Shown here piece by piece: positions 21,492 through 64,000 of a DNA stretch of 64,000 nt. The translations under genes were made by a program, and so were the position numbers. The notes beneath the pieces are model-generated. The model worked only from the letters and a program-made list of their open reading frames with translations, was not told where the DNA came from and searched no databases. The stretch is from Thalia democratica (taxonomy: Eukaryota): the NCBI GenBank assembly GCA_965202585.1, contig CBDBBG010000121.1, forward strand, positions 1 through 64,000, written 5' to 3'. Positions within the stretch are counted from its first letter, which is position 1; each line of letters opens with the position of its first letter.

Positions 21492-21778
21492 ATGTAGAGT
21501 AACTGTTGTAACTGCTTTAGTTACATTTAAAATTGTCTGTAAAATTTTCTGGTCAAATTAATTTATTTTAGAATATATATCTTGATTTTATACAAGATAC
21601 AACTTATAAATTTCGTTTCTAAAATGTAGCTCCCTTTTTAACTGTAACAGCTTTTTGCGTAATCATTAACTAACCATTTAAATTAAAACTAAATTTAAGG
21701 CTTAGCTGTTTTACCTTTTACTTAAAAACATGAGTTTACAATTGTTTTTATCACAGGAAAGAAATCAAAGAAGTAAAT

Positions 21779-21872
21779 ATGAGGTTTGCCTCATTAGGAA
21801 GCATTTTCCTTGCTCTACTATTGTTGTTAAGCTGCCACAATACTAATGGACAAGATTCTACTGAGTCTAAAG
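21779..21872 (+). CDS. ITGB4-like: Integrin exon 1: start codon and signal peptide
   Basis: Acceptor tttatcacag at 21756. [24 protein letters not shown]|QDSTESK. Phase-1 donor matches exon 2. Confidence 0.85.
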
Positions 21873-24800
21873 GTTAAAAATACTCGTTTAATGTATTTAA
21901 ATCTGTGATTGGATATGCTTCAAAATTTGTTAGAAATTAGTTCCAAAATAACCAAAATGATTGATTAATATATTGTTGATTTGATTTCCTTTAAATCTTT
22001 AATTAAACTCAACAGTTTGACTAGTTTTTGAAACACTAGTAAATGAAAACCAAAACAAATATTATGGATGAAGTTTATAATTTTAAATTATTTTAAATCT
22101 TAGTTTAATTCGACCGTGAAATTTTTGTATTTATTTACTAAAATAATTTAAATGTATGGAGAAAGACAAATATTTGACATATGCTCGTTAGAAAAGTTTA
22201 CCTTAAGCAAAGTTTAACTTGTTTTGACTTAAATTTGCTTTGATTGTAACATTTTTTGGTTTTGTATCTTTCTGAAAAAAATTTGCTTTTAAAAAACGGC
22301 ATTGTTCAAGCTTTAACATTAAAGGTTAAAGCATGATTTATAAGTAGTTAAAAATTAAAAAACTATACAACAAAACATATTTTTATTTTATGCTGAAGTG
22401 TTAATATAAAACGACAAAGTAAATAAAACAAAACAATTTTTTATAAAGATTTTGTGAATGTCTTATGTGTAACAGAGATTAAAAATAGAATAAATTGTAA
22501 AAATTAAGTTTATTTTTTATTCAAATCCTTGCAAAAAATACTATTAAATGTAAAGTTTAAACAGCTGACTAAATATTCGCTAAAGATAAACAAATGACAA
22601 AATGTATCAGTGTAAATAAATCTTTTTTGATGTATAAATGGTAAGAAGCAAAATTATTTTGCGGTTGTTATTTTTAAGACAGCTAAATTAATATTTTTTA
22701 TTTGTTTTAAAACATACAGAGTGCATAAAACCAAAATAATCCTTAAAATGGAAACTTTGCATTGAATAGATATTGTCACGTCTTAATTTAGTTAAACTGG
22801 TATGATATATATTTTTTCAAGGATATATTTTTAGAAATTGTTTTTTAAATTTATTGAGAAACTTTTAATACTTATTCATTCAAGAGTACGTATTTTTAAA
22901 CAAATCAGAATTAAAACAGTTTCGAGTTAAAACAATGCTTTTTGATATAAATTATCTGTGAAAAAACTATTTTGACATAAAACTGTAAAAAATACTAAAC
23001 TTCATTAATACGAAACTCAAAAGAAAAGTTGTTTGTTTCATAGTGAAAACAGCTAGTGTTCAAAATATATTTTCCAGATATTTCTGTACTACGTGCTGCT
23101 TTTATTTGCTATTATTACGTCACAATCTAAACAATCAGTTTGTTTCCCCATAGTACGAATTTTACACAGCTAATCAATTATGCTTTTTCTTAGGGGTTTT
23201 GTACATTTTTTGATTTCTTGTTCAGTTTTTAAGGCACAAAATATTTTATTCATTGCGAAGAAAGCTTTTATGATAAAAATTTGCAATTGTTTAAATACAA
23301 ATAATAAATGTTGTGAGTCAAACTATAAAAAAACGTTCCTGTATTTGTTTTATCACAGTTTTATATTTAAATGATCAAAAGCGAGGGTTTTTTTTTGACA
23401 AACATAATTTAATAATATGTTGCTTAGTAAAACATTTATAATAGATTACTGTAATTTCTTAACTAAAAGCCTAGTAGTCACTATTTTAAGGACAAGTTGA
23501 GCTTTTAAGATGTACTTAATCTATGGTGTCTTGTGTTTTTGTTTACTAGTCCTTCAAAATAAAGTAAATGTTTATCACTTTGATACTTATGTCGGATAAA
23601 TACTCAAGTATTTTTAAACAGATAAAGACAAAAAGTAACCGCAGAACCTTTTTAGTAAATTAAAAAACTAATAATTTTTTTTAGTAACTATTTTAATAGT
23701 TAAAGAACATCTGTGAGAAATATACTATCTAAGACAGAAATAATAAAATAGATAAAAACTGTGAAGAAATAACAAAAAAAAACGAAATAATTTTTTTATT
23801 TCAGATGTGTGCAAAGCATCCGCTGGATGGCAATACTCCGCCTCCTCATCCAGGTATTTCTCCTCATCATCAGGAGGAGGTTTCTCCTACTCCATGTCGG
23901 AGTTGAGTGTCATTTGCGGGGATTCCCTCGTTCCGCAAGAGTGCATCAGAGCGCATCCGCAGTGCCAGTGGTGCGCGCAAGAAGTAAATTGATTTAATTG
24001 ATTTCAAACTATTAAACTTTGTTGACCGAATATTTAAAGTGATTTTTATTTTAGGTTAATGAAAACTTTTACATAAGTTTACCAAGTATTTATAAAACTT
24101 TTCAACTATTTTGATGCACAAAAATTACTTTAAACCCATTTTTTAAGTCACATTTTTAACTCATAGTTTTATTTTTCCTTCATATTTTGGTATTTATCTT
24201 GGTTCATTCTTAACTTTTATACTAATTAGTAACATTTTACAAACAAAACTTTTCAATCATTTTGTAACAGTCTTAGTTTATTATCATTCACGTTTGATAA
24301 CTTAAAATGTTATTACTTTTCATCAGTTGTTTCTTCAAAAGATCTTTGATAAAACTAAATTTTATAATAATCTTTATAAACCTCAACATAGAGAAAAACT
24401 TGAATTTTTAGTTTAAAATCCTTTAACTTTAGTGAAAGCTTGCTTTTAAGTAAATACGTTTAAAGTTGTGGATATGTTTTAAGATAAATAAAACTTCACA
24501 AAGTTAATAGAGTTTTTATTTCAAACTGTTTTTACTACTTCAAATGAAGCAGTTCAACTAAATTGCAGTCAAAACTTAAAAAAATATTTTAAATAATTAA
24601 AAGTTTTTTTATCTAATACAAATTAGTTCATGATATTTATATCTAGCTTAAACTTGAATTATATAATATTTTATGAAGATTTATTGTCCAAAATTGTATT
24701 CTTTAACTGTAATCCATAGTAAAACGGAAAAACCATAAAACACATAATTTATACTCTATACGGCTTTAGTATAAGATCGAAATTCCTGATATCATGTTCA

Positions 24801-27800
24801 AATATCCCAAAGTCATGAAGCGTAAGAACAACTATCAATATGTTTAAACTTAGAATTTGTAGAATTTATGTTTGATAAAGTGAGAGTAGCAAAGTAGCAA
24901 AAAAACGTTTACTAAGTAAAACAGGAGTGATAGGTTGCTTATCTTTTAAAAGATAGTTTGAAAACTTATGTAAATGCTAAACAATGTTTTCTGAAAAAGC
25001 TGTTTTAAACAAAGTTTTTATTCAGCTAATCAAATAAATCTGCATTTTTTCAAACTGAATAAAATACACAATAGCTTTGTTAATAAAAAATATTAGTTTG
25101 TAAATACAATATTTATGTTTTAAAATGTCGGTAAAAATTAATTTATTTTAAATATAAAAAAAAAAAACCCTTACAATCTACGTTTATAAAGTAAAACTCA
25201 ACTATAAGTGACCTTTTTAAATTTTTTTTATTAAAAACGATTTTTGTTACAGCTATCTGTATACATGTTTTTGTTTTGACTGGAATAAAATACGACTTCT
25301 GTGTAATTTAAAATATTAGTTTGTAAATACAATATTTATGTTTTAAAATATCAGTAAAAATTAATTTATTTTAAATAACAAAAAAAAACCCTTACAATCT
25401 ACGTTCATAAAGTAAAACTCAACTATAAGTGACCTTTTTAAAAAAATTTTGTTAAAAATGATTTTTATTTTAGCTATCTATATACATGTTTTTGTTTTGA
25501 CTGGAATAAAATACGACTTCTGTGTAATTTTCATATTAATGGTAGAAGTTTAGACACTTATTAAGCTTCATCAACATTAAACAGGGATTTAAAAAGAAAA
25601 GATGCAATGTGGAGAGCGTGCTGCAAGAACAAAACTGCACTCAGTTGGAAGTTGTCAAGTCGGAAGCCAAAGGGGATTATTATAAAGGCGAATACCAGCG
25701 GTTTAACGCAAAATCTTCTCAGGTGGGTGAAATTTCGGAGATTTAAATTTTTCCACAAAGAGCAAATTATAAGCTCAGTTACAATAAATTATATGGTGTT
25801 AAGTAACAAACAGATGAAGTAATAACTATCTTTTATTAAAAAAATAAAATTTTTCAATTTGTTAAAATTTGTTTTTAAGCGAGTGTTAAAATAGAAAAAC
25901 AATTCAATCTAGTGTGTAAGAGTTTTTAAAGCATCTGTGTATTACTTAGAAATAAATTAAGTTTTAAAAAAAGATACCTTAGTTAAGGTTATGATTTGAA
26001 ATACTTATGCGTGCTTTTGTTAAAAGCAGAAAGTTTTAAAACCGACCGTCTTTTACGATAAAAATATGTGATAAATAAGAACATATCGTTGCAAAAACTT
26101 TATTTTAAGCTAAATATAAGTGGCTATCAAAATAAATTTTATGATAATTTGAACTTCAAAACCTATTTTTAGCACAAAATATTACCAGCATAATTGCTGT
26201 TCAGTTTTTATTCGCTCAAGCATAACGAAATTTACAGGTTATTAAAGGTTAAAACGCTTTGAAATAGCAATAATTTAACATAAACTAAATAAAAAACTTA
26301 AGCGTAATTTGTTTAAATTCGCAGCTTTATTTAGATTAAAACATAAACATAAACAAACTAAGTTGCAATCTAGGTAAATTAAAAGTTGTCAGAAGATACG
26401 CTAAACTAATTAATTAGATACAAAGTATTCTTACACGTGGAAATAATGTATACAAATATAATCAACATTCAATTATGACGTATAGCGATATCAGATAGTT
26501 TATCTTTGGAAAATGACGCAAGCTTACAAGCTCTCGAGATAGACAAAGTTGTTCTCTTTTTTGCACAGATAAAATTTATTTGTGATTGTTATGTATACAA
26601 GTTGATAACTGATTTATATAGTTCGAACAAGTTAAGTGATTGCTTATTCGTAATCGTTTTGCTCAATTCTTTTTATATGCAACCTTATTTAACAATAATT
26701 AGTCATTTTTCAGGGTTGAATCAATACAAAATAGTTGTGTAAAGTAGAAAAACTTTATTTAAAGAAATTTACTCTATATTTATTAATACTTTATCAGTTT
26801 GAGTTGACTTTCAAATTTAAATTTCAATGTAGAAATATAAACTAAACAAGTAAAAAAAAAACTTAAAGCTGATTTTTAAGAAAAAATGAAAAAAACAGTA
26901 AAAACGTTAGTATAAAACAGGTTTATACTCCAAAACCAAAATTCTTAAAAATCTTAATTTAAAACTAAAACATCTTAATTTGTGGTTACTTTGTTTAAAA
27001 AGTAGTACTTGATCTAGATAATATAAAAGATGAATTACTACTTCTACAAACATTAAACGAGTTTACTTTTTATTATTTCTGCTATAGGCGCAAAACACAA
27101 TTCTTTAAACTAGTTATAAATACTCGCCAGACAAGCGACAATAAAATCTTGATTGAAAAGTATAACCATACGATAATTAATCATAGCTTTATTATTTAAC
27201 TGTTTCATCTTTATCTTCAACAACTCCTTTTAATAGTTATATTTTTGATTTTTTTTGTTGTTATGTAAAAGTTTTTAGTTTTATATTTTACAACATTTAT
27301 AAATTGGTCTTGAGATGTATATGACTATTCTAAATATTCTTTTATATCAATGATAGTTATGGTTATACAAATGCTTCCATGAACTTATTGTTTTAAATAC
27401 AACATTGAAAATTTATGCAAGTTATCACCAATTTTAGGATAGTAATTTACCTTTATGGTTATTAAAGCTGTTAAAACTTTTATCTATTAGTAAAACATTA
27501 CGAAACTTGTAGCATTCTTTAGAAACAAAACTTGCAGTTAGTAGAGCTTTTAAAAACTTTTTTTAACTACCATCGATTAAACATTTAAAAAGTTAGCAAA
27601 AAATTTATTAGCTTCTAAATCAGTTGTTATACAGGTAAATGTACGCATCGGTGACACAGTACCATTTAAATTCTTAGTTAAAGAACCAGAAGTCTACCCC
27701 GTCGATTTGTACTACCTTATGGACCTTTCGTTCAGTATGAAGGACGATTTGAAAAATGTTAACAAACTCGCAATAAAAATTGGTTTGTTTTGTTTGAACT

Positions 27801-30800
27801 ATAAAAAAAGTAACAAAGTTTTATATTATTTTTGCACGCTGAGTTTTACAAAAATTATAACACTTTAAGTCAAACAAACAAAACAAAAGTTACTGTCTTA
27901 AAATAATTTTAAATGTATTTTTAAATAAAAAATATTTAATTAAGTTTTACAAAGAGTTTATAAGATTTTTAGTGATTTTTAAAACAAAAACTTTTTAAAT
28001 ATAGTATCAAATTTTTTCACTAATACTTCTTCAGTTGAAACACTTAAAATGCTGACATCTGGAGCCGACGGAACCGTCAGATTGGGATTCGGAACTTTTG
28101 TTGATAAAGTTCAAAGCCCCATGACACAAATGACACCTTACAAGTTCGTTGCATTATTAACACTATTAATTTAAAAACAAAATCAAGTTCTTTTGTTGAA
28201 ATAAAAAGTTAACATCAAATTATTTTCAAAGTTGTTCATATTACTCGAATTTAAAATTTTTATCAAAAAATTAGTTTTACTGATCTGCTGAAAATCAAAC
28301 AGACCTAAATATGACAATTACGGTGACTTAGGACTAAAATTTGGTTTACAGAGCTTGACACTTAAAAAAAACTATCGTTTGAAGCAATATGTAAGGTTTT
28401 CAACAAAACTCCAATTTCTTCATTTACAAATATTTTTCAGACTGCAGCACCCATACTTTAACGACACGGAGCCACCCTTCTTATACGAGAACAGGATAGG
28501 AATGACAGACAACATCACCCTGTTTCAGGAAGTCGTGGGTGACGTGAAAGTTTCAGGTAACCTCGATCCCCCAGAAGCCGCACTAGATGCCATGTTGCAG
28601 GTATGATTGATGTTTTGGTTGAAAACTTTTATAATTGCTACACTATAATAAAGATTGAGTTTGTAGCATCGTTATGAAACAGTTCCGTAGACTTCTTCTT
28701 AGGCTGTAATGTATTTTATAAGAACATTGTTGTCACACTATCTATACTTAACAACTAAAAAATCCTAAAATGTTGGTCGTTTTATAACTTACTTATAGTA
28801 ACAACTTTTTATTAATTCCACGCTTTAAGTAGTAAAAATAATTTAAACATAACTTTTATAACTCTAATTCAAACTCCATAATTTACCAGGTGGCGAAATG
28901 CAACGATCTGATTGGTTGGAAGGGTGAAGCTTTGAGGTTGATGCTGGTTGCCACGGAATCGGCTTATCACTACGGGGGTGACGGTATGGACAAGATGGCC
29001 GGGTTCACCAGGAGCAACGATGGTGAATGCCACACGGACAAGGAAAACGGAAAGTTAGTTTCTTATAAGGGGAATTAAATATGATTTTGATTTGTTTATA
29101 ATTTTCATACTTATAATTTACTTGAACTTTTATGGTTGTTTACTTCGATTTATTGGCTAGATAAAAGTTACTATGTTTAATGACATTTCAATCCTCTTTG
29201 ATTTTAAAACTGTGAAGTTATTTTAAGTTTGATAATAAAGAAAAAATCTTAACATTTATTTGTGCCTGTTATGAGCATTGTTGTTGAAATTGTGCCAACT
29301 TTCGATTTTTGAATGGTTTTAGGATTAATTAAATTTATCAAAAAAGTTATTTTATTAGTTATTTTTGTGATTTTAACACAATATAATTAATCAAAACTTT
29401 AAATACAAAAAATATCTTTTAAACTCTAACTTTTAAGAAAAAATTTAAACAAGTTTTAAGGTATTAATTTTACAGATATATGGACGATGGAACAATGGAC
29501 TACCCAACAATCACACAAGTAGTAGATGCAGTAGAAGAAAGCTCCATTACACCGGTATTTGCTATCGGAAGAACTTACGAAAACATGTACCAGGTTATAA
29601 GAACTTTTTTTTACTTATATTGTAGCATTATTACTTTTCACAGCTTTTAATACGATTATGAGCACCATGTAAGATTTTTAATGCTGGAGTTGTTTTATAC
29701 TCAAAGAACTTTTGTTTATTTTATTAATAAGACTACTGTACAAACCGAACGACTAAGATAATACAGTGTCCATCAATTGTTTATGACGCAGTAAATATTA
29801 AAACTTAATATTGCTAAAGTTTAGGTTCGTTATTTTTTTTTGTATGTGTTGATTCTATTTTTTGAATATTAGTAATAGAAGTTTTTAATCACCAACGTAG
29901 TGGAATTATTCTACAAAAAATTTTATTATTGTTTAATCAAATTCATAAAAAATCAAAGTTTTTTTAGTTGTTGTATAACATCTTTTATTTCACTTAAGCA
30001 ATTTTTGAATTTATTGAAAGTTATATGATTTATTTTTATTGTCTAAAATCTATTTAAATTTACAAAAAATAGTTTTCCATTAGTAGTAACTTGTTATTTG
30101 ATTGCCTTAATTTAAATATGTGCTTTGAGTTATAAAAAACTACATACTTTCACAGTTAGTTCACATTATGAGGCGAACATTTAAAGCTTAAACTGTCAAA
30201 TAAGACAAGTTAAAAACACTTTTCTTCATACATAAACCAATCTAACGCGCGTAAACAAAACAATTTCTACATCAATTTTATGAATGAAAATAAGCAAGCT
30301 CTGAGTCATTTTGAGATTTGTAAACAACAACTACAAAAAACAATTTAAAATCTCTGTCTCAAGTATCTAAGTATGTATCAACAAACTTAATTCAGTGCTT
30401 ACCAAAATCACAAACAGTTTTAAAATATTATAAAAGTTTGGTTTAAACCTATACAACTACTTTTATCTTAATAGTTGATGTTTTGAAAACTATATGCTAC
30501 TTAAGTTTGCTAAGCTAGTTTGGTGTTTATTCATTATTAACAATTTAGGTAACATTAATTAACAAATGTTCTAAAATTTAATGCGTTATTTTTCTAACAG
30601 CACGTCTCGAAGAATGTATTCAAAGGTTCAACATTCGGAGTATTAAAAAACGATTCAAGTAATATAGTAGACCTCGTTGAAAAGGCGTATCTAGATATTT
30701 CTGGTTCGTTTTAAATAAAACTCTTCAACTTTTATATGTATACTAACGTATTTGTTACAATTAAATAATAAGTTATTTTTTTTCAACAAAGTACCATAAA

Positions 30801-33800
30801 AAAATAGTTAAAGAACTAAATTTCTAAAATAAATTGTCTTTTTTAGTAGTGAGATAAGAATTTAACTATATCCTACTGATTAATTACATAATTTATGAGC
30901 AAAAGTAATTAAAAAAAACCTTATTGTAATACTTGCAAAAACAGGTCAGCAAGATCTTAGGACAGCCAATCCAAACGAAGATAACTTGTGTGTGTGGTAT
31001 GATGTACAGTTACCTTACAAAGACGTAAAAGATACATTGGAAGTTTCAAACGCTGTTGTCACAAAACTCAAGTCCGGTGACGAGGTAAGCGTGTTGTGAT
31101 AACGCAAAGGTGTTAGAGGTCTAACTAATCAGTTTAAACAGAGTTTTCATTGTTACTTTATTAAATGTGCTAAGCTTAGTTATCAAATGGTACATCAATC
31201 CTCTTTATAAAAAAGTATAGGTGACTTGAAAACATAGTTTAAATTTTTACGTTTTAAAATATATACAAGGTAAAATACGATATGAACATCAATGCGAACT
31301 TGGAAGCTTGCGATAAATCAGCTCTGAACTGTTCAGGAGGCGTCATCAGCCTGAAAACTAGGAAGTACGAGGAAACCTTACCTGTTGAAACCACCATACT
31401 GGCTGCATTCGGCTGCTCTGAATTTGTTGAAGTAATAAATTGAATACTTGATCACTTTACATTGTTGTTTTTGAAAACTAAGAATAACTATAAGTTAATT
31501 GTACATTAATTTCGAGGTAAAAATGTTGATATATTAACATAAGTGTTGTTAAATTTTGTATAATATTTAAAATATCAGAAAAAAAGATAACAGTTTTGCT
31601 TTGCTTATGTATTTAAAACCAAAGGTCTAATAAAAATTTTTTAAATTTACACAATATATCTATACATTTTTTAACATGCAGTGAAAAATTTTTTTTATAG
31701 GAAAACAGTGCAAAATGTAGTGGCAGAGGTAACTTCTCCTGTGGTATTTGTTTCTGCCCTACAGGCTGGCTCGGTATTGCATGCGAGAAAAGCACGATTC
31801 CTAAAGGATGCATTGGTCCTGACGGAAAAAAATGTTCAGGTTAGTTTTTGTAGATTTATAATTTTCTCATTAGTTAGTTTTAACTTGATAGTCATTTTGC
31901 CATAAAACATTATTTAAAAAACCTTTAAAGAGATACTTAATTCTGTGTTAAAATTGCGGGTATTTTTTTCTAAGCTTTGTAAGTTACGCTCGATCTCATT
32001 TATTAAAATTTAGTTTAGTGTTTAAACTTAGTAGTGTGAAACTTAAGTCTGGTTTTATGCTTAGTAAACTAATTTAATTTCAGTATAACAATGCGTTAAA
32101 AAAAAAATTTATTTTAAACTATATACATATGTTTATAAACCATTATATTTCAAAACATTTTTTTGAAAGTTTTTGGTAAAAAAAGTAAGTTTAATATCTA
32201 ATTTAACTTTTAGTGAAATAAAAACTTCATACCTTAGTCGTCTCTAATTATATTTTTATTTAGGGTGAGCTAAATGTTCAGAAATAACATATTTTTTAAA
32301 AAGTGCATTAATATAACTCTTGTTTAAAAAGATATGTAACTATGTTGGAAAAATATGATGTTAAAAACAAACATTAATCAGTTATTGTATTAAAAATTCT
32401 TATATTAGATACAAATGTTTGACATAATATAAAGTATTTACTTTCAGAGCGAGGCGATTGTTCACCGATAACGAACGAGTGTCAGTGTTTTCCCGGGTAC
32501 AACTATAATAAGGAGCGGATATACGGGGACTTCTGCGAGTGCGATGAGTGCCCGAAAAACGCGGGAGTCGTCTGTAGTGGACACGGAACGTAAGTTAAAC
32601 TTTCTTATTAATTTTAAGAGTAGTAATTACATTTTTTTTAAGTATACTTTTGTATACTTTATAGAGTTTGTTTTTATATTTTACAATACTGATGAGCTTG
32701 GTGTAAAAATAAATTCAAAATAGTTTGAGAGTTGCTAAAAAACATTTATCACTTTTCTGTACTTTTGTGCAAACAGTGATTTTCTGAAAATATGCGTATA
32801 TCAATTGATTTCTTTAATATATTGCCTAGTACCTTTCAGTTTTAGTTTTTATATAACAGTTAAGGTTATCTAATTTAATTAAAAGTTCATTGTTCATACA
32901 AAACCACCATCACTACGAAAAATTTATGCTTTACTAGTTTTATACAAAAGCTTCCACATTCAAACTGCTACAGTTTATTAAAACTTCACCTTTTTACAAT
33001 TCCAACCAAACAGGCCGACCAAGGTGAGAGAGTGCGGGTGCGAGTGCTTGTGCGACGAGGGTTGGGGCAGGATCGACTGCAGCTGCAGCATGTCGCGGCT
33101 CACGTGCACCTCTCCCGCGGGGGCCATCTGCAGCGGGAAGGGCGTCTGCAAGTGCGGGACCTGCAAGTGCGAGACCGGGTACACCGGGCCCTACTGTACC
33201 GAGTGCATAGAAGGACCTAACAATGTTAGTTGCTTGCAAATATTGTGAATATGTTTGGTTTTTAAATCGTTGTGTTTTAAGAAGTCAATAAAATATTAAT
33301 TTTGGCTGAACTTTTTTTTTTGTTCTTTTGTTTTGACTGTTTACAAGTTAATTTGAAAATAAAGGTGTTTGATTATATGTATAACAAATGAAAATAACAT
33401 TTAAAAACTTTATCTGCAACTTTTTAATGAATTGTAGATTTAAGCAAATGAAAATTTTACAACTTTTGTTTATTTTAATAACAAAATAAAAACTTTAACT
33501 GGCATCTAAAATATTTTAAGTTAAGTTACAAAAATTTATAAACTGGAATAGAACTCTTTAAACAAAGTTTAGACATAAAAAAATGTGTTTGTAGAGAACT
33601 TTTACAAAAAGTGTATCTAATCTATATATTCATACTCAAACGACAATATAATACAAACTGAAAAATATAAAGTGGTACAAAAGTTTTACAAAACCTAAGT
33701 TTTGTTTCACTTTAACCCAACTATGCTTTACACAGGAATGTCCAAGCTGTGACAAGTTTGAGAACTGCGTCAAATGCACCATGCACGGTACCGGACCTCT

Positions 33801-36800
33801 GCGAGAAAGCTGCGCGGAATCGTGCCCTCATCCCATACAAGCAGCAGATGTTTACTCACTCGACGACGGTTGGTCTGCAGAATAATTACTCATGCGTGCA
33901 ATAATCTATTTGAACTTGAAAGTTTACTTTGAACAAAAATGTGAACAAAAAGTTTTTTAACAACTAGCTAAACCAATTTTTTTTTATTTCAATTGAGTTA
34001 CCCAACAACGCATAAAACTTTAAACCAATATATAAACATATATTTTTTTAAACTAATATTTTGACATTGAATTTTGTAGAAGTACTTGACCGTGTGAAGA
34101 ATAATTAACTTCTTTTACGCTTTAGCATTCAATGAAATAAAATATCACCCGGAAATAAGGCACACGTTAACGAAGTGTAAAATTTATTATCAATTTGCAG
34201 AGGAAGCAGATAAAAGGGGTATGACGCTGTGCAGTAAAACTGACCCGCTTGACGACTGTGCTTTTTACTACGAGTTTGCCACCATCGGAGATGACGAGTA
34301 CACTATCATTGCTGAGAAAAATAAACGTTTGTATTATATGTATTTGGTTCTGTTTAGATTTGTTCAGTTTTGTAAATAATCGCATATACTAAAACAATTT
34401 TTGATAAAAGTGTTTTGACGTTAGAAATATGTTATAAACAGTAAAAAATAAAAAATTGTTTGTAAAGTTTTACGTGAAAAAGAATTCTTTTTGAAATGAA
34501 ACTTTTGTATTGTTTCGTTGTTTTTAAGACACGAAAAACTTAATAACAGATTAATTGAACTTTTGTTTAAATTGTAAACTTTAACGTTTTTACATTGCTT
34601 GACACAAAACCGATTTTTTTTTTATAAAAGCAATAAAATAAAGTTAACTCTAAAGTCCTTTTCTATTTAAACTAAAAATCTATTCAACAGTAATGTAAAC
34701 AAAACAAACCATTTTAAGACTTTGGAAATTTAAAGTTAAAATTTATTTAGATTAATTATTCTACTCTCTACTAAACATTCTTTTTTTTTTCGTCAAAATT
34801 TCATTTGAGCAATGTAGTTGTCAATAAACCAAGTAACTTACAAACAAAACATTCCCTTCAGGTTGCAGGAAATCATACTCCTTGTTGATAATCCTGTGGT
34901 GCGTCCTTCTCTTCCTCCTCATCGGGTTGATCCTCCTCTGCTGCTGGAGGTGCTGCGTGTACGTCATAGACAAGGAAAAGGAGAAAACGTTTTTGAAGGA
35001 GAACATTCCATTACCGACACTCATACCCCTCGTTCCTACTATTGGCGCAGGTTTATTTTTATTTATACAAATTTTAAATAAAAGCTTAACTAGTTAAAAA
35101 ATTTGTTTTAAATTTTTTCGGACATATTTAAAAAACCTTTTTCTTTTTTTTTTTAATGAACAACCACATTATTTTATTTACTACGTAAATAGTAATGTTT
35201 GAAATGTTGAATAGTAATGTTTGAAAAAGTCTTTTTAAATGTTATTTGTAAATATCTAGGAAGCGTGATTGAGTTCATCAAAGCCAAGTACCTGATGAGA
35301 AAGAGCGACAAGGTGGCAATCATCCCTGTAAGAAGAAGTTTTACTCGCGGGGAAACCCGGCTCAACTACCGCACTTACAAAGGTTTGGCGGGAAGTTGTA
35401 ATAACTTATTAATTTTTCAATATGTAAGCTAAAATCTAACTTTTACTAATAAGTAACTTATTACACTAGTTGTTTTGAATATTACCGGTTCATTTATCTT
35501 TAAATGTTTTATTGTTAACGATGTTTCAGTTGTTGTTGAGCTGATTATACTTTTGTTAACCTTTGCACTAGATATACATTTTTTTAATTTTACACTTATC
35601 AACATCGTTGAACATTAGTGCATTGGTATTGCTTTAAGTTTGTATTAATCAATTTCATCACAGGTTCTGCTGAAGACAACGATTTTGAAGTTTTGAGTCA
35701 AGGTGAGGAAGGAACCATGATCAGAAAACGAATCATGTCAAGAGAAAGGTTATTTGCTTTAAATGAAAGTATAAACTGTTTTCTTGTTTAATGCTGTATA
35801 GTTTTTAAATTCTAACTGTTAGACTAACAGTACGGAAAATAAGAATATGATAAAACCGAAAAAAAACTATTAGTTGATTCTATTATCATGATGCAATGAA
35901 ATTTTATCACCGTCTTAAAAAGGAGTGAAAAGATCTAACAAGGTTCCTATATTAAAAATTAATCATAACTAAAATTTATCAGTGCAAGCCAACAAGAGTC
36001 AGAACCTCTGTTGGGCGCCGGCCAAGTTCAAGAAGAGAGAATAAAGAAGGTTGAGACTGGAGTTACTCAGAGCGGAGTGCATTTCGAGGTCTTGGACGAA
36101 AACGACCAGAATCGTCCGTTAGTCCAAGACGATGAAGCTTTCCAGCAAGAGGAAATCAGCAGTTACGGAATGGGAGAAGTTGTGTGAGTGTTTGTTTTAA
36201 GAAAAAGTCATACTTATAACTATGTTTATAATCTAAGTTCAGGTTTACTTTAATTTAGCCTTTCTTTAAACGTTTACGGTAGTTTATATAGTTTGTGAAA
36301 AAATCTATTGTATTATTTTAATTTAAAATTTTTAACAATAATCTTGATTAATTTTTATCAGTTAGCACTTTTTCTGTAGTTTCAAAGACGGTGAGGAATA
36401 TGCAAATATCGAAATTCCCCTAATATACGATTTCGAAGGTAAGGAGGACGCCTTCTGGGTGGAACTTTACAATCAGGAGAGAGGAACAGCACTTGGACTG
36501 AAAAGAACTAAAGTTGTTGTTATCAAGGATGAAGGTTAGCATGTTTTATTGTTATTATTACAATTTTAATAGTAATAACTGTAAACTAATTTAATCTTTT
36601 TGACTTTAATATTTTTTAGACTTATGGTTTTATTTACTTTTAACTAAAGAAAATTGTATCTTAAGTATTCCTGTTGCAACCTAAACATAATAGAAATTAA
36701 GCAGTTGTATTCTACAATTGTTTTGATACCATAAAACTTAGAACCAAACAGACCACGGAATAATCGGATTCCCGAAACCCAGCTACGTGTTCAAAGAGAA

Positions 36801-54800: not shown

Positions 54801-57800
54801 TGGGTTTACTAATAAAACTTTGTATATTTTGATAATTTAAAGTTTTGACAACGAAAAACTCTTAAAAACTATTTAAAACAAAGCTGTATCTTAAAACTTT
54901 ATATAAACAAAGCAAAATTTCCAGACGCGGGCGTGATTGAAACGGAGCAGGAGCAGATAATAGTGTTTGGAACCGACGCAAACGTCAGGATCCCCATCCA
55001 GAGAAACGGACCGGGAGTCAGGTTTCCTTCTACTTGCACTTGGGAAGCTGAAGACGATACCGCAATCAGGGGCAAGCACTACAGGGCTTGGAAGGGAATC
55101 ATTGAGTTTGAAGAAGGAGAAAACAAGTTGGTGTATATTAAAAAAGAAAATTCTTAGTTTTGTAGTTTTATTTTGCAACATTTCGTTTTGAAGTTTTTTA
55201 TGGTCTATGAGCACAGAATGTTTGGAAAAGGTTTTTAACTTGTAAATGAAGGTTACTTACTATTTAACGATGTATTGTTTTTTATGTTTAAAAACAAAGT
55301 GCTTTGGTATAATGTAGATAAAGCTAACATAACTTTTATTAATACCAATGATTAAAGCTGTTTTGTATTTAGATTCAAGTTTTTAGTTTTAAGCTTAATT
55401 TTAAAAGTTCTGTTAGCTATTTCCTTATACTACTAACAAAATCGATACAATTTAGCTTAGATTGTTTTCTATAAAAGTTTTAAAAATTAAAAGTAGTAAA
55501 AAGATATAGCAACAGTGGTAAAACAACAACTTTCATCAACAGAGGTGAAATTGTTATTCCAATCGCTAACGACCCGAGTGGTGACGTCATGTTTTTCAAC
55601 GTGAAACTCATTGAAGCGCAAAATGGCGCGAAAATTGGACCAATGAAAAGCACGCAAATTATGATCGATCACGTTGAAGGTTTGTTTACTTTAACTACAT
55701 TTAAACATATTTTGAAAAAAACCTAAATATTTAAATCATTTTCAAATGATGTTTAATAATAAGAAAAAGTTCTAAAATAAAACAAAAACTTATTTATTAA
55801 AATTTTTTGATACAGTTGTTTTAAAACACAAAAGTTGTAAAAGAGTCTTTTGAAAATAATTATTGTCTTTAATAGAAACACTAACCTTTAATTTTTTTTT
55901 ATAAAAATAATTCATTATTATATTAGTATAACACTTAACAATATGTTGTTTAACGATTAAAGATAATGATATGTTATTTAAAACTCTAAACCGAAAATAA
56001 AACATAATAATAATTTCAGAAAAGACCCAAGAAATTCTCGTACAACGACCTTGGAGCCCGGATGTGAACGTCGCTGGCAAGATATCATTCAGTGACGTCA
56101 CAATGAAAGTGCAACAGAGCGAGGGAGAACTGGTTTGCAAGGTTTTGAGAAGTATTGAGAATGAGGCGAAGGGAAGGGTTGTGGTTCCTTGGAGCATCCA
56201 AGGAGGCGGTCCTTTGTACGAGGTTTGAAATTGAAGCAAATTTTCAAATGTTTTACTATGTTTTACCAATAATCAAAGTTTAATAGTTGAAAGCTTAAAA
56301 CAGTTTTAAAAATAGTTAAATAATGTTTTGTTTGTAATCTATAAGGTAAACTATACTGTCCAAAGACTAAAAGTGGAAGTATTTAGCTTTTTACAGTTTT
56401 GTAATGTTATAAAGGTTTATAGAGTAAAAACGTTTCATTTAATTTGTAAAATAGGTAGAATGGGTTATTTTTAAACGACTAAGTTAACTTGATAGTAAAC
56501 GACTTTTTACTACATTTTAGTTATTCATACAAATTTAATAAATGACAGAAACTTTTCGGACAAGAGACTTTCAAAGAAGGTGAAACGGAAAGCCATATAA
56601 AAATAGAGCTGACAGACGCGCCTCTCCAAGATGAAGAAGACAATTTCACGTTTGTTTTCCTTACAACCTGTTACAAGTTTTAACTACTTTAAATCAACTG
56701 CTGCAAATTCATGATAAATTATGTTTAAAGTCTGTATAACAAGTTGTTGTGTTTATTTAAACTAAGTAGCAATTTATTAGCTACAAATAATTTATTGATC
56801 AAGATTAAATTCAGACAGCAATTATTTTTAGCTTAAGGTTTTTATTAATCAGTTGTTTTAAAATATAGCTACTGCCTTTAAAATAACAAATAAGTTTTAT
56901 TGCTTAAACAAACAGAATTGTGCTCGGCAAACCAACCGGAGGATTTGCACTTGACGAAGATGCAAGCGAGTGCAAGGTGACGGTTGTGAATGACGTCACG
57001 AAGGGAGAAAATAAGCTTCGATAAAGATCAGATCACCGTGGACCAGTCGAGTGAAAAGATCGTCATTCCAGTGCACAGGACTATCAATAATAAAAGTAAG
57101 TGCATATAAACACATTGGAAATAATAGTTGTATCTAACTACTTAAGCTTTATAACTTTTTGTAAGAACAGAGTCTAAAGTAATACTTATGTTAAAGCATT
57201 TAATGAAATGATCAACAAAAGTTAAAATCTTATGTACAATATATTTTAGTTAAAATTACTAGAAACATTTTATAAAAGTGTTGTAGTGGTTTCGATATTA
57301 TTACGAAAATAGCTTAACTTATTTGTTAAAAGTTTTAACCACATATACAAAAATCTATAAATTAAAGTTTACAAAACTATATTTTTTACAGAGAAAGTTC
57401 GCGTTCAATGGAAAACAAAATCTGTTGACGGAAAAGAAAACGGTTTCGACAACTTGTCTGGAATTGAGACGTTTTCAAGTGGCGAGGACCTTTCTCACAT
57501 CGAGATCAAGATCGATCAGAAGCCGCTGGAGAGTTCACAAGACACATTCGTCGTTGAGCTGATCGAACCAAAGAATATTTTCGCCACTTTGGGAGAAATT
57601 CCAACGTGCAATGTTACGATAAACAACAATATTGGTTAGTACTTAAAAAGCTTACAGGTATTTTTTTGTTTTATATATGTAATTTAAAACCCTTATATAA
57701 ATTTAATGTGACTAAGAAGATATCAACAAAAAAACAAACATTAAATTAAAAGCTCTTTTAAAGTGAACAAAACTTAAAAAAGTTGGGAAAAAGTTTTATT

Positions 57801-60800
57801 ATTTTGAATTATCTCTTAAAATTTATAAACTCATAATGCAATTAGTTTAAAATAGTATAGATAAAATGTATCAAATCTCCAAAAAAGTTATAAAATATTC
57901 GAGAAATAAGCTTCATGTTAAAACAGTTGCTTATATTTTAGCACAAGCGGTGATAGACTTGAGTGAAACGAGCAAGCAAGTTAAACAGAGCGACGGCAAA
58001 TTGCAGCTGAAACTATTGAGAACAAAACAACCGCTAGGTAGCGTGCAAGTGCCATGGAGAATTGAACCTGATAACAACGATTCAGTTTACTATGATATAA
58101 CAGGTCTATATGCTTGTTATTTAGTACTACATGTAGTAATTGTTGATTTTAATATAACTCTAAAAGCTTTAACTTTTTTTATTGAAAAAAAAATTGTTAT
58201 CGAGTTTATCAAAAAAATTAACAGTTTAAGAAGAACATTTTTACTAATTTTAACTTTTTGTTAAAACCGTTTAATTATTTTAAGTTTTTAAACTTTTGAT
58301 AGCTGCTATATCTAACTCAGAAAATAATCGCATAAAGCCAAAAAAAAACAAAGTACTCTTTTTAATAACTACTTCGGAGCAAAATGTTTAGTTAAAGTTC
58401 GAAAATAATGAAACTTAACTGTGACGTCATAGGAGACGTGTTGTTGCGCGATGATCAGATGGAGCAGGACATCGACATTCTCCTCCCAGAACTTCCACTG
58501 TCCAACAGTGAGGAGAAGGTGAAAGTGGTGTTGGGACACCCCATCAAATCTGCAGCCGTCCTCGGACCTAACCAGAGCTGTGACGTAACAATTCAACACG
58601 ACCTTGGTAAGAATTAATATGTTTTTCTATTCATTAAAATCTAAACGTAGTAATTTTATTAAATTATATATGAAAATTATTTGATTACTAATGAATACCG
58701 ATTAAGACATCGCAGAATTTTATCAGTTGAAGAAAATATGATTGAAAATAAGTACCTGAAAGTACTTTAAACGATTAGTTTTAAACACTATAACAGCTTT
58801 ATACTTAATTAATAAGTACTTAATTAAACTATCAGGACAAGGAATAGTCCAGATGGCGGCGGATGAAGTGACTTGTTCAAGCGAAGATGGAGAAGCTGTA
58901 GTGATTGTTAAGCGGGAAGTCGGAAGCGCTTTTCCCGCCGAAATTGATTGGATCGCCGAAGACGAATCAGCTGTTTTCAAAAACCATTACGAAATCAATG
59001 AAGGTGAACCTAGAACTGTGTTAAAATCTAAAAACTTCATCTCGAAAGTTGTAGTGATTAATCTATTTTAAGCAGTAGTGTTTAGATATGTCTTGCTTTT
59101 TAGCATTTAAATTTTATTTTAAGCTATCTCTAGCTACTTTAGACAAAAACATTTGTAAGCAGTATACTATATGGTACTTTATTGTGAATAAATTTGCACA
59201 AAAACTATGTTTTTATACAGGTACCATCAAGTTAAAGTCTGGAGAGTTGCAAAAAGCAATAAGAATTCCAGTTTTTAACGACCCAAGTGGTGAAACGTTT
59301 ACTTTCAACGTCAATTTGCTTGAAATCAGGGGCCGTGACGAACTCGGATTCAAAATCAACACTCAAGTTTCAATTGAAAACACTCCAAGTAAATACACAG
59401 TATTTTCTATAGTTTGATAACATTTGAGTTTGAGCTGAATTAACACAAAGTATTTTTTTAATCCACATAAAATTTTAAATCAAATTAAGCTCTATTTGTT
59501 GTAAATTGATGCGATACAAAACCAATTAAGAAGATTTATTTAAGTAAAACTATTCTTTAAACATACCTGTTTTGACCTAGAATGTTTAAAAAACACAAAG
59601 TAAAAATCATTTTTACATTCATCTAAAACAGTAGCTAATTTTAATTTTAAGTTTACAATAGTTTAAACCAGTGGTCGTCAAGGTGTACACTGGTGCACAT
59701 TAGTGTACACAAAACTTTTTTTGGGTTGCACGAAATTTTTAGGTACACGAAACTCATTAAAGGGGCACGAAATTTTGATATTACAAAAAAAAATACATAG
59801 AGTTAGGTTAAGTATGTAGTTAATGTTTAATAAAGTATTTAAAGAATACTAAACTTGGGATTTTGTAGTAACTGCGGAGAAGTGTTCAATTAATAAATAT
59901 TTAGGACAAAGCCATATAACTAAAACATCATTGTGAAAATAAGGTAAAACAAATAAAGAGGTCAACTAAAAAGAGTATCAAATTAAAAATTTCAGCTTCA
60001 GTTCTTAAATGGTTTGCATGTAAATACAAACTGAGTTATGACTTTTAAGGAGAAATGCACTAGTAAAAAAATTTACGTAGTCCCGTCACTAGCGGTGCTT
60101 ATTGAAATTAGATCTTGTTGTGCACCAATTGTTATTTTTTACAGCTTTGCGTACACAGAATTTGATTAGCTTGACGACCACTGGTTTAAACTGTTCTAAA
60201 TTATTTGACTTGCAAATTATTAACCTTAAAACTTTTCAGTGCTCCCCGGACCGGTGTTGGACTTCAAAGCGGGTCTGAACACTCCACAGACCATTGGAGC
60301 TTCGTGGTCTGCTCCTGAAGCAGGCGGTTGTCAGGATACCGGGTTTCATACTGGGACAAACCTGAAAACATCAAACAAGTCGAAGTCGCCAACGACGTGA
60401 GTAGTAGTAGGCCTTATTTACTTCTTTAAAAGTTATTAGTATTGTGTAATTGTGATATTGTAATTTTTAGAGATTCTAATAACTTACTGAAAGAATAAGA
60501 TGATTAATAAATGTATAAAATCTAACAGATCAATGAAATAGAAATAGAAGAAGTGAAGGCAAACACACATTACCAAATCAATGTCAGACCTTTTAATTCT
60601 GTTGGTAACGGACCTATTTCAGAAACACTCACAGTTGATACTCCACCAGGTATATTGTGAATTTACAATAAAGTTTTTAGTTATTTACAAGTAGTTTAAA
60701 TATTTACGATATTATGTAAGTAGTCTGCTTAAGAATGAATTTAAATAATATCCTATTATATATGTACTTTTAGGATTTTCAATTGCTTTTATTCATTATA

Positions 60801-63800
60801 AGTTTTAATTAGTTAGGCTTTCATCAAATTTTGATTTTGTTAGAGAATAGATAATTTAAAATTAATTTGAAACTTTTTTTGAAATTTTTAAACAAATACT
60901 TTATAACAAGCACTCAATCTAAGTTTTAATGACAGTGCACGGTGTGATTTCGGTGGCTGAAGACAAGATCGAGTTGAAACAGACGGACGGTAAACTGAAG
61001 TTGAAAATACTGAGGGAAGGTGAAAACAGAGGTAGGGTTGTTGTGCCATGGATGGTGAAAACAACACTGCCCAAGTCCGCTTACAAAGTTGGTGATACTA
61101 AAAACTTTAATTTTTAAAGACATATTTTTCGATAATTTTTTTCATATTTTTGGTGTTACGTTTTTTAAATGCGAACAAAGGTTTTAGAAGTGTGTAAAAA
61201 AGAGTTTTATTTAACTAAAACGATTAAAGTTACTTTTTTTATCGTTTAAAATACGTATGTATATATTTAGATGTTAATAATAACTAAATATTTTAAATCT
61301 ATTTATGTTCTGCAGAACTTTAGCGGTCATGAAACATTCAAGGATGGCGAAAAAGAAAGCACAATTAAGTTTGATTTACCCAGCAATCCTCAAAGTAACG
61401 AAAAAGAAGACTTCAGGTAAAATCTGAATAAAGAGTTAATGTATATTTAGATTTTCCATAATGATTAGAAATAAAAACAGTTTTGTATAATTATAACAAC
61501 TAATCAACTTTGCGTCTTGCATCAAAATCATAACTAGTTGTTTTTTAACTATAACTCAAGCTCCCTAACGATATCTGTTTTAGTAATGTAAAATAAGATT
61601 CTTAAATAAATCTTTAAACATCAATTCAGCATCATACTGGGTCAACCCACCGGCGGTTCGGTCCTCTCAGACAAGGCCGAGTGTCACGTCATAGTCACGC
61701 ACGACATCCAGCCCGGAAAAATACAATTCCACAAACCCTCGTACGAGTTCAACCAGACAGATATGGAGGTCGTGGTGAAGGTGGTGAGGTCAGTGAACTG
61801 CAGCGGAAAGGTCAGGGTTCCGTGGAGGGCCATTGTTGAGGACGATCAGTTTTCGCCCTACATGGAAATCGGGGGTCACGAGACCTTCAAGAGCGGCGAG
61901 GAAGAATCTCACATCAAAATCAAAATTCCACAGGTGAGGATCTTTTAACCTTCTAAAATATATTTATTACAAGTTTTTCTACAACTAAACCAAGCTTTAC
62001 CTTTAAAGGAATAAATGAATATAGTTAAAAATTTATTGCATTCGCTTGATTATAAAGATTTTCAGTATTCCTTTTTTAATGCTGTTTTTGATTACTTTAG
62101 TAAACCGTAAGGTTTAGCAGTTCTGTGAGTAAAAGTAAAAACAGCACAAAATACATTTAAAATTTTACAGGATCCGCGCCCTGTCCTCAAGGACAATTTT
62201 AAGATCATCTTGATGAAGCCAAAACCTGCTAGCAGCATCATTGACGCAGATTGCAGTTGTGACGTCACAGTTGTGAACGACATAACACCGGCAGTCATTG
62301 AAATGCTGGAGGAGGATGTTAAGGTGAAGCAGTCGGATGGAGAACTGTCATTACACGTGCTCAGGAGCGAGGAACTGAAGGGAAGGATCGTGGTTCCGTG
62401 GAAGATCTTGCCGGAAAGCGACGACTCCGTTTACATGAACGTCACAGGTAATGAAAAGTTATTGATAATAAACACTTAAAAAAGTTTGAGCAACTAGCTG
62501 TTGTTAATCATCAATATTTTGATTTGCTTAATATACATGTCTGTGATTATGTTTTTACATTCAAAATTTTGTTTTTTAATTTCATTAGAGACTTGTATGA
62601 TTTGATAAGTCTGCTAAAGTTATAATACATAAAGTTTAATGCATAATTTTTAATATAACATAGTTAAACTTTTTTTATTTTGCATAGATTACAGATGGTT
62701 AACAAAATAAATATTACAGGTGAAGAGACATTGGAAGACGACGAAGAGAGATCAACGATTGAAATCCAACTTCCTCAACTGCCTCTGTCCAACACAGAAG
62801 AAACTGTTTCTGTTGTGTTGGACGAACCGTACGGTTCACCCGGAAAACTGGGCAACAAGAGAAGCTGCATCGTTACTATCAGACACGATAAAGGTTTGCT
62901 GAAAGTGATACTGTTTTACTACTTGACACAGACTTTGATTTTACTTAGATGTAACTTATGATATTTTTACTGTACACAATGAAAGTTCTAAAATATGTTC
63001 AAAACAAAGTTCATATGATATCAAAAATCACTTTTTATCAGTATCAAAAAAGCAAAACGTAATTTTCTAAAAACTAAAAAGATATTTTAATTGCATCTGT
63101 AGCTTTTGCGCACCTTATAGTTATACCCAAAAGTTTTAAACATAAAACCTAAAAGTGTCTTTAGTAGTTTTAATATAAATTCAATAAAAAACTCACAGGA
63201 GAGGGAGTCATTGAAATGGAGAAGGCGCAGGTCACATGCAAGAGTTCAGACGAGGAAGTAGTAGCTGTGGTGTTGAGAAAAGAAGGAAGAGGTTTCGCAA
63301 ACGAGGTCGAATGGACTGCTACTGATGGCAGCGCTAAAATTGGTGAAAACTATGGACTCAACAAAGGTATGTAATTGAGGACTATCATTTTGACTCAAAG
63401 CTACATTCACGTTTTTATACCAAACTTGTAATGTTACAACTAACAGTTAGTAAAACTGTAGATGTATTTAAACTATTGAAGTGCTGAAATAAAAAAAAAT
63501 GTTAAAACATTTACATTACCAAACTTAAGTAGAAAATAGTTTTTGTTTATACTCCCATCTGCTACTAAAACTAAAAAATAAATTTTTTGTTATGTTTTTG
63601 TGAATAAAAAAAATATTAACAGGAGTGGTGAGCTTCAAAGCTGGAGAAGCTTCGAGCGAAATCAGGATCCCTATTACTAACGATCCATCGGGAGTTGAGA
63701 GAGATTTTGTTGTTAGTTTAGGCGAAGTTGGTGGCAGAGATGTTGCTGGAGAGATCATGTCGACGAAAGTAACCATCTCTAATGAAGCATGTAAGTATCT

Positions 63801-64000
63801 CAACATTGTAGCTAATGCTAGATTTTAGTACAAAACATAATATTTAAATATGTTATAAACAATATATTAAGATTTACAATTTATAGATTTACCTAGTTTT
63901 TAAAAATAAAAACAATCCATAAGTTTGTTCAAACTTTCTAATAATTTCCAACAGTGCTGCCAGGTGGCAGTCAGTAACTTGGAAGGTGAACTCGCCAGTC
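21779..64000 (+). CDS. ITGB4-like: Giant integrin beta subunit, beta4-like ectodomain, cytoplasmic tail of at least 25 Calx-beta plus FN3 domains; 3' incomplete; three 1-nt frameshifts in the distal part
   Basis: 72 coding exons traced with GT-AG sites and continuous phase, about 11,860 nt. Order: signal peptide, PSI, hybrid/betaI ([43 protein letters not shown]), 4 I-EGF, beta-tail, TM, then repeated Calx-beta (F-x-x-x-x-Y..R..G..W/Y.T.DG.A..DY/F..G.l.F.DGE..I.I..F.v.L..LG..V.I.ND) and FN3. Confidence 0.93.
23805..25722 (+). CDS. ITGB4-like: Integrin PSI domain exons (23805-23983, 25585-25722)
   Basis: [15 protein letters not shown]|[18 protein letters not shown] is the PSI cysteine pattern. 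Confidence 0.9.
25087..25530. repeat. Two-copy intronic tandem duplication, about 223-bp unit
   Basis: aaaatattagtttgtaaatacaatatttatg...gactggaataaaatacgacttctgtgtaattt starts at 25087 and again at 25310, with few differences. Confidence 0.92.
27635..31431 (+). CDS. ITGB4-like: Integrin betaI (VWA-like) and hybrid domain exons
   Basis: Exons 27635-27782, 28035-28143, 28441-28600, 28890-29053, 29476-29593, 30601-30703, 30945-31084, 31270-31431. [21 protein letters not shown] is intact. Also [37 protein letters not shown]. Confidence 0.95.
31701..34326 (+). CDS. ITGB4-like: Integrin I-EGF1-4 and beta-tail exons
   Basis: Exons 31701-31839, 32448-32589, 33014-33224, 33736-33868, 34201-34326. 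[52 protein letters not shown]. Confidence 0.95.
34862..35050 (+). CDS. ITGB4-like: Integrin transmembrane and juxtamembrane exon
   Basis: [40 protein letters not shown] followed by a Pro-rich linker. Phase-1 donor to the first Calx-beta exon. Confidence 0.93.
35260..42477 (+). CDS. ITGB4-like: Calx-beta domains 1-5 (cytoplasmic)
   Basis: Exons 35260-35382, 35664-35748, 35983-36183, 36380-36534, 36752-36945, 37623-37812, 38160-38281, 38539-38713, 39788-39946, 40647-40832, 41212-41370, 42295-42477. Example: [37 protein letters not shown]. Confidence 0.9.
44224..48947 (+). CDS. ITGB4-like: Pro-rich linker, Calx-beta domains 6-10 and second linker
   Basis: Exons 44224-44315, 44708-44911, 45210-45399, 45631-45824, 46122-46266, 46653-46819, 47166-47364, 47641-47964, 48265-48429, 48679-48846, 48906-48947. 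Confidence 0.9.
49177..55679 (+). CDS. ITGB4-like: Calx-beta domains 11-17
   Basis: Exons 49177-49473, 49722-49892, 50116-50256, 50428-50628, 51188-51391, 51698-51832, 52119-52237, 52594-52727, 52973-53181, 53454-53669, 53973-54154, 54497-54668, 54925-55126, 55543-55679. Confidence 0.9.
56020..60649 (+). CDS. ITGB4-like: Calx-beta domains 18-21 and FN3 domain 1 (two frameshifts)
   Basis: Exons 56020-56222, 56549-56649, 56916-57095 (+1 A near 57010), 57392-57634, 57942-58103, 58433-58606, 58836-59003, 59221-59388, 60240-60396 (-1 nt near 60329), 60529-60649. FN3 motifs: [34 protein letters not shown]. Confidence 0.85.
59669..60183. mobile_element. Non-autonomous hAT element (MITE), 515 bp
   Basis: Perfect 14-bp TIRs CAGTGGTCGTCAAG / CTTGACGACCACTG. 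8-bp TSD GTTTAAAC at 59661-59668 and 60184-60191. No coding capacity. Confidence 0.95.
60936..64000 (+). CDS. ITGB4-like: Calx-beta domains 22-25 and start of FN3 domain 2
   Basis: Exons 60936-61087, 61316-61416, 61630-61933, 62171-62447, 62720-62893, 63199-63366, 63623-63790, 63955-64000 (partial; apparent +1 G near 63966). Confidence 0.87.

Follow-up and report, generated by a model that had tools for sequence, protein, structure and literature searches.

The window analysed here, a 64,000-nucleotide (nt) stretch of Thalia democratica contig CBDBBG010000121.1, carries on its plus strand a gene that runs from position 21779 to the window edge, and in which exons for an integrin beta ectodomain and transmembrane segment are followed by those for a long array of Calx-beta domains. 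The gene is known here from genomic DNA alone, all its splices being predicted. The window is AT-rich (GC 0.22-0.35 in 2-kb windows) and resembles animal genomic DNA rich in short exons, the plus-strand stop-free segments from ~21,700 onwards corresponding first to integrin beta and then to a long run of Calx-beta half-domains. Exons were located by GT-AG dynamic programming trained on the coding segments of the window itself, with a stricter single pass that included homology bonuses and was refined by hand. From the ATG at 21779 to the window end, 70 GT-AG exons form one stop-free frame of 3,926 amino acids (aa) in which all phases are consistent once two indels are corrected, and the predicted product reaches at least 431 kDa in its window portion, a size at which it would surpass all other integrin subunits known to us. 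The first model produced by the exon finder also connects the ATG at 21779 with the window end without a stop. Several small exons of that first model (48906-48947, 59672-59692, 57032-57095 as a separate exon and a forced end at 63955-64000) were dropped or merged in the stricter pass, and iterative retraining of the finder resulted in over-fitting, with micro-exons filling introns, and was discarded.

Exon 1 (21779-21872) contains the start codon and a predicted signal peptide, which is the most hydrophobic N-terminal segment of the translation, and it ends at a GT donor. It is followed by 15 exons (23805-34326) that encode the integrin beta ectodomain, with PSI, hybrid and betaI domains, four I-EGF-type repeats and a beta-tail domain, as assigned by Pfam on the exons and by tblastn searches of the window with integrin beta proteins. 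The Integrin_beta VWA family (PF00362) is matched by three exons (E 4.6e-10, 2e-11 and 2.1e-13), and PSI_integrin, I-EGF_1, EGF_integrin and Integrin_B_tail are matched on further single exons. The translation also contains the betaI metal-site motifs, namely DLSFS (DxSxS) of the metal-ion-dependent adhesion site and NLDPPE. Judged from these domains, the protein is an integrin beta subunit with a complete ligand-binding ectodomain, predicted to pair with an alpha subunit and to bind matrix. The next exon (34862-35050) encodes a single transmembrane helix (residues 763-784), whose motif resembles that of a related protein discussed below, and a membrane-proximal segment that contains D and lacks an NPxY motif. 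No N..Y/F motif was found in the first 80 tail residues. Since NPxY talin-binding motifs are missing, it is proposed that this receptor would not couple to actin through talin. Cysteine accounts for 6.7% of the ectodomain and for 1.15% of the tail; this low tail value, together with the signal peptide and the single transmembrane helix, places the tail in the cytoplasm.

Transmembrane exon and first Calx-beta exon are separated by a 209-bp phase-1 intron (35051-35259), with its donor GT at 35051 and its acceptor AG at 35258-35259. At the 3' end of the transmembrane exon, ...ACT ATT GGC GCA G up to position 35050 is followed by GTTTAT, while the acceptor side reads ...ATATCTAG immediately before the next exon, which starts at 35260 and from its very beginning encodes the initial strand of a Calx-beta domain. 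Phase 1 is also the starting phase of 35 of the 53 cytoplasmic exons. An earlier interpretation of this DNA, made from its letters and hereafter called the sequence-only reading, had proposed an integrin beta ectodomain and transmembrane segment joined in phase across a 209-bp intron to a cytoplasmic Calx/FN3 tail; the Pfam matches on the exons, the exact phase-1 intron and the topology and cysteine content just described agree with it on each of these points.

Calx-beta domain 1 is encoded by four exons (35260-36534), starts ~35 residues past the transmembrane helix and is interrupted by an acidic stretch of some 50-80 inserted residues, the domain being recognized through two matches to a hidden Markov model (HMM) built within the window (model positions 2-82 and 44-106) and through tblastn with sturgeon beta4. 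Domains 2-21 (36752-59388), mostly of two exons each and with mostly phase-1 boundaries, were identified with the window HMM and by Pfam Calx-beta matches on exons. They are followed by an FN3 domain of two exons (60240-60396 and 60529-60649) and by Calx-beta domains 22-25 (60936-63790), supported by the exon model and the window HMM, whose final exon closes at a phase-1 GTAAGT donor (63790). In total, 25 tandem units in the window are recognized as Calx-beta by the HMM, which was bootstrapped from a unit contained in a single exon, and Pfam Calx-beta (PF03160) matches single exons with E 5.8e-11 (a half-domain exon), 1.4e-05 and 5.9e-04. The second FN3 exon is matched by Pfam fn3 (E 0.0029), and the FN3 domain, once corrected for the indel described below, gave local phmmer matches to each of the four FN3 domains of lamprey beta4. 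By analogy with the sequence from 60240 onward, positions 63955-64000 (LPG...) may be the first exon of a second FN3 domain, although this candidate comprises only ~15 residues and, as assembled, is shifted by 1 nt relative to the phase of the 63790 donor. The count of 25 consecutive Calx-beta domains given by the sequence-only reading is thus reproduced, and so is its tail of more than 3,100 aa not ended at the window edge, 3,142 tail residues being found in the window without a stop, whereas its two FN3 domains reduce to a complete one and the short out-of-phase candidate.

Linkers between units are mostly short; three gaps are longer, at 19, 23 and 100 residues, and the FN3 domain accounts for the 100-residue one. 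Units 1, 6 and 11 are the long ones. Although the consensus of the 25 units displays the textbook Calx-beta pattern, the units are mostly 20-30% identical among themselves, and from this divergence the array is judged to be old and already diverged. A weak period of five is discerned across units 1-15 (for example, 42% identity for units 2 and 7, and 35% for units 1 and 6), and a four-unit repeat closes the array, with identities of 42% (18 and 22), 36% (19 and 23), 49% (20 and 24) and 41% (21 and 25). The first copy of this four-unit repeat is followed by the complete FN3 domain and the second by the possible FN3 start.

Taken together, these features are best explained by one gene of the beta4 lineage, which very probably encodes a type I receptor with a giant cytoplasmic Calx-beta/FN3 tail of at least 3,142 residues. 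Some aspects of the locus weigh against this explanation. The reading frame does not end within the window, the C-terminus lying beyond its edge; two frameshifts occur in distal exons, where the assembly may be wrong or the assembled haplotype defective; and read-through past the donor at 35051 meets a stop after ~15 further codons, with an AATAAA near, so a short-tail isoform ending in this intron may be encoded.

The read-through stop and the nearby AATAAA would also fit two separate genes, that is, a short-tailed integrin beta ending in the intron after 35050 and an independent cytoplasmic Calx-beta/FN3 giant starting at 35260 or further downstream, for instance as an operon cistron whose trans-spliced leader is joined at the 35258-35259 AG. 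In-frame ATG codons at 35217 and inside the first Calx exon (YLMRK) could serve such a second gene, and operons with trans-splicing are known in tunicates. Nonetheless, the first Calx strand starts exactly where its exon does and a start at MRK would truncate the domain, the spacer that would have to hold all the signals measures only 209 bp, and none of the known integrin tail motifs would be present in the short form past the membrane-proximal segment. Moreover, vertebrate beta4 has the identical order of parts, and two relatives of the window protein encode ectodomain, transmembrane segment and Calx domains in one open reading frame (ORF) with the same transmembrane motif. All this makes two genes highly improbable.

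These relatives belong to a set of four proteins (P0148, P0186, P0185 and P0025) encoded on Logan and ENA contigs (L001-L004). P0148, of 1,875 aa and present on three Logan contigs, was found by phmmer with one betaI exon and is encoded by one continuous contig ORF that contains the ectodomain, the transmembrane segment and Calx domains. It is colinear with the window model from ectodomain to Calx array, the transmembrane segment included (1,783 aligned columns, 27% identity, E 3e-157), its transmembrane motif GILLLCCWQC is close to that of the window protein, and a Calx-like strand appears within ~30 residues after it. Its ORF stops partway through a Calx domain; more Calx ORFs lie downstream on the same strand. 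P0186, on the ENA contig (L004), displays the same layout, with ectodomain, transmembrane segment and Calx domains in one ORF that ends inside a Calx domain; here, ~75 AT-rich bases with GT...AG follow, and the next ORF then resumes the split domain (...IEIELYANQQQRDEG on one side and FKVVLEDPG...LVTIIDDDD on the other). Over ~10 kb of one strand, 14 and 15 Calx HMM matches were obtained in the relatives, the latter number on L004. Since the ORFs of P0148 and P0186 are uninterrupted, ectodomain, transmembrane segment and Calx array are physically one frame in this nearly intron-free sister lineage.

The four relatives share with the window protein the succession of integrin beta, transmembrane segment and Calx array and form its sister group (support 100/99), but they are only 27-37% identical to it, their genes are compact with very few short introns, and no FN3 domain was detected in their sequenced parts. 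Two further ORFs of contig L001 (12329-15244 and 15316-16314) gave no Pfam match and no similarity to the window model. The same contig also contains, between the P0148 ORF and the next Calx ORFs and on the same strand, a tetraspanin ORF (6449-7459, Pfam E 5.5e-15) that is probably nested in an intron. The tetraspanin CD151 is a partner of alpha6beta4 in hemidesmosomes, which makes this location intriguing.

The two frameshifts were evaluated with three public DNA runs (X1-X3, from two samples and 95-99% alike), which behave as DNA in that introns are covered and splice joints are absent. At 57008, the assembly contains one A too many, which disrupts the reading frame of exon 56916-57095 between ...VNDVTKG and KISFDKDQ..., and this base is absent at full depth in X1, X2 and X3. 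Behind position 60328, between SWSAPEAGG and LSGYRVSYW, the assembly is without four nucleotides (CCCG) that are present at full depth in the same runs. If left uncorrected, both frameshifts could be bridged only by odd splice choices that cut domains, the exons being otherwise continuous. Within 56000-61990 these are the only two exonic indels, both frame-restoring in all three runs, with the other listed indels being intronic, and within 34000-39900 all twelve indels listed for X1-X3 are intronic. Because all three runs restore the frame at both sites, the gene is intact in the population, and it is the assembly or the assembled haplotype that is twice frame-shifted.

Single nucleotide polymorphisms (SNPs) point in the same direction. 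Among the 22 exonic SNPs listed for 34096-37444 and 56079-57354, 17 are synonymous and 5 non-synonymous, far from the ~1:3 ratio expected without constraint; therefore, the predicted frames are translated and under purifying selection in both proximal and distal parts of the gene. A decaying copy, whether a pseudogene or a defective allele with its functional counterpart elsewhere, would account for the frame-breaking indels at 57008 and behind 60328, for a possible third one at 63955-63965, and for a 4-nt indel being atypical of homopolymer error. Such decay is nevertheless very unlikely, as the three other runs are intact at both sites, the synonymous bias extends to the distal exons (9 synonymous versus 4 non-synonymous SNPs within 56079-57354), no other in-frame stop occurs across the 70 exons and the splice sites are intact. 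Phase-consistent splicing, the 17:5 SNP ratio and the single ORFs of P0148 and P0186 all favour the earlier proposal of one receptor rather than two transcripts. In the intron preceding the FN3 exons, the three runs also reveal a high-copy repeat (59600-60199) with a summed contig depth of 27,000-76,000 versus ~80 in its flanks; it is not part of the protein-coding sequence and was the source of a spurious 21-nt exon in the first model.

Assignment to the beta4 lineage relies on an unrooted IQ-TREE phylogeny of 39 ectodomains (677 columns, LG+C20 posterior mean site frequency model, 200 bootstrap trees). In it, the window protein groups with P0186, P0025 and P0148 (100/99), and this group stands together with vertebrate beta4 from lamprey, hagfish, sturgeon and teleost on one side of a branch supported by 100/99 and present in 200 of the 200 bootstrap trees, with protostome and deuterostome beta1-like subunits on the other side. 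A quick tree of 55 rows recovers the same grouping (Shimodaira-Hasegawa-like approximate likelihood ratio test, SH-aLRT, 97). Furthermore, in tblastn the Calx domain of sturgeon beta4 (P0036, residues 903-940) matches the first Calx exon at 35262-35375, and both the tree and this match sustain the beta4-lineage assignment made by the sequence-only reading.

Integrin beta tails typically measure ~50 aa and are a hub of inside-out and outside-in signalling, with beta4 being treated as the sole long-tailed exception. Vertebrate ITGB4 and the window protein share the order of ectodomain, transmembrane segment, Calx-beta and FN3, a cytoplasmic tail and the lack of a canonical talin-type motif arrangement. 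On the contrary, ITGB4 has ~1,000 tail residues with one annotated Calx-beta and four FN3 domains, while the tail of the window protein exceeds 3,100 residues and includes no fewer than 25 Calx-beta domains. The beta4 tail binds plectin, BP230 and BP180 and nucleates hemidesmosomes. The distance from the membrane also differs, as roughly 270 residues separate the transmembrane helix from the first Calx domain in the fish and lamprey beta4 proteins compared, and ~35 residues do so in the window protein, in which no equivalent of the beta4 connecting segment is seen.

When applied to vertebrate beta4, the window Calx HMM also detects, in the teleost and sturgeon proteins, a second Calx-like domain immediately behind the annotated one (P0071 1107-1206 and P0036 1021-1121, i-E ~1e-14), and a single Calx domain in lamprey beta4. 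As far as these sequences go, two domains in fish and one in lamprey hint at a stepwise loss of Calx units in vertebrates, and the vertebrate beta4 tail, with its one or two Calx-beta and four FN3 domains, is most simply regarded as a reduced form of an array such as the one described here.

The fold of the units was assessed through an AlphaFold model of unit 9, which is encoded by one exon (47643-47963) and was modelled with a predicted local distance difference test (pLDDT) score of 93.6. Its top Foldseek matches are 2QVK, 2DPK and 3FQ4 (TM-scores 0.80-0.82), corresponding to CBD1 and CBD2 of the Na/Ca exchanger NCX and to the beta4 Calx-beta domain, the comparison with the latter (3FQ4) giving a TM-score of 0.82 and a root mean square deviation of 2.4, in keeping with the seven-strand beta-sandwich of Calx-beta domains. 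CBD1 and CBD2 of NCX/CALX thus share with the array both the fold (Foldseek E 3e-09, TM-score 0.80) and the cytoplasmic location, but they are two domains in the loop of a transporter, where they act as calcium sensors, rather than members of an extended adhesion-receptor array. By analogy, the array might act mainly as a cytosolic calcium sensor or buffer on an adhesion receptor rather than as a passive tether. The closest solved folds being calcium-binding domains, the acidic character of the tail (isoelectric point 4.74) and the retention in many units of acidic E-F loop residues and of Asp/Glu just past the last strand would suit that function. Yet acidic calcium-site positions are only partly kept across the 25 units, at most columns in well under half of them, and the beta4 Calx-beta domain, the nearest by lineage, is reported by Alonso-Garcia et al. 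(2009) to be stable without cations, so that a predominantly calcium-sensing role appears unlikely.

A tether or spacer is a quite possible role for the tail, though one we advance tentatively. The receptor would pair with an integrin alpha partner and bind matrix outside the cell, while its tail would form a long, acidic, modular rod, semi-flexible or extended, with a length that we estimate to be of the order of 100 nm (at least 26 modules of ~4-5 nm each). Such a rod could span the distance from the membrane to cytoskeletal or plaque partners, or else set the spacing of the plaque. In this way, one polypeptide would take over some of the spacing and linking for which vertebrate hemidesmosomes use both plakins and the shorter beta4 tail, plakin linkers being replaced or supplemented. 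The sequence-only reading had likewise suggested a rod of ~100 nm, as a possible tether or spring for attaching epidermis to matrix in place of, or next to, a plectin linker.

Long tandem Calx-beta arrays on adhesion-related proteins are also found in ADGRV1, FRAS1/FREM and the sponge aggregation factor MAFp4, but those arrays are extracellular, whereas that of the window protein is cytoplasmic and follows the sole transmembrane helix of a type I receptor. In the searched literature, intracellular Calx-beta domains are described for NCX and beta4 only, beta4 having a single one, and Calx-beta arrays are reported only as extracellular (ADGRV1, FRAS/FREM, sea-urchin ECM3 and the sponge aggregation factor). 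If the proposed structure holds, this would be the only long intracellular Calx-beta array known, on a beta4-lineage tail three times longer than that of vertebrates and composed nearly entirely of Calx-beta domains.

The closest precedent is that of Ewan et al. 2005 (PMC1145181), who identified Ciona Ci_beta5 as a beta4 orthologue, were unable to tell whether a long tail exists, and mentioned, as data not shown, short ORFs resembling the beta4/Na-Ca-exchanger domain in the 10 kb of genomic sequence 3' of it. Compared by this published description only, Ci_beta5 resembles the window gene in being an invertebrate-chordate beta4 orthologue with Calx-like ORFs on its 3' side, but no domain count and no gene model were published for it. 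No Ciona protein was among the matches of our protein searches. An integrin with a giant Calx tail was not found in the searched literature beyond that hint, so the architecture was foreshadowed in 2005 and, as far as found there, has apparently never been described. The novelty suggested by the sequence-only reading consequently holds, within the searched literature, for the description of the architecture, but not for the first sign of it, which those Ciona ORFs had already given.

In a phmmer search of one betaI exon against 1.84 billion representatives, no protein of this organism was found, and no integrin above 2,000 aa other than amphioxus P0105. This protein of 2,761 aa presents the integrin alpha domains FG-GAP and Integrin_A_Ig_1 before the integrin beta VWA, four FN3 domains and no Calx match, and is probably a merged model, which could hide an amphioxus beta4-like gene. 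Word-based searches with the P0148 tail and with P0186, of limited sensitivity and bounded in length, returned no named invertebrate protein that combines Integrin_beta and Calx-beta, only vertebrate beta4; some automatically annotated genomes may already include models of this kind.

The window gene would answer the question raised in 2005 by providing an extended tail in an invertebrate-chordate beta4 orthologue. It would also offer a concrete route to the beta4 tail, through repeat loss from an ancient and diverged array, and would make the evolution of hemidesmosome-type anchorage before plakin-dependent vertebrate hemidesmosomes testable. A further scenario, more speculative and in our opinion rather doubtful, is that an ancestral beta4-type integrin used a giant Calx-beta/FN3 rod as its own cytoskeletal linker, hemidesmosome-like anchorage being provided by a single receptor of more than 430 kDa whose rod may stiffen or relax with cytosolic calcium, and that the vertebrate tail and plakins came later, by reduction of the array and outsourcing of the linkage.

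Regarding the remainder of the window, no tRNA genes were found in its 64 kb. Stop-free segments resembling a membrane (renal-type) dipeptidase occupy 3369-8360 on the minus strand, that is, upstream of the integrin gene and on the strand opposite to it. Just upstream of the start codon, at 21267-21494, two frames contain repeated GPQ.F.PRAAF-like strings; these point to a short repeat, inverted or tandem, close to the promoter, which might be a small mobile element.

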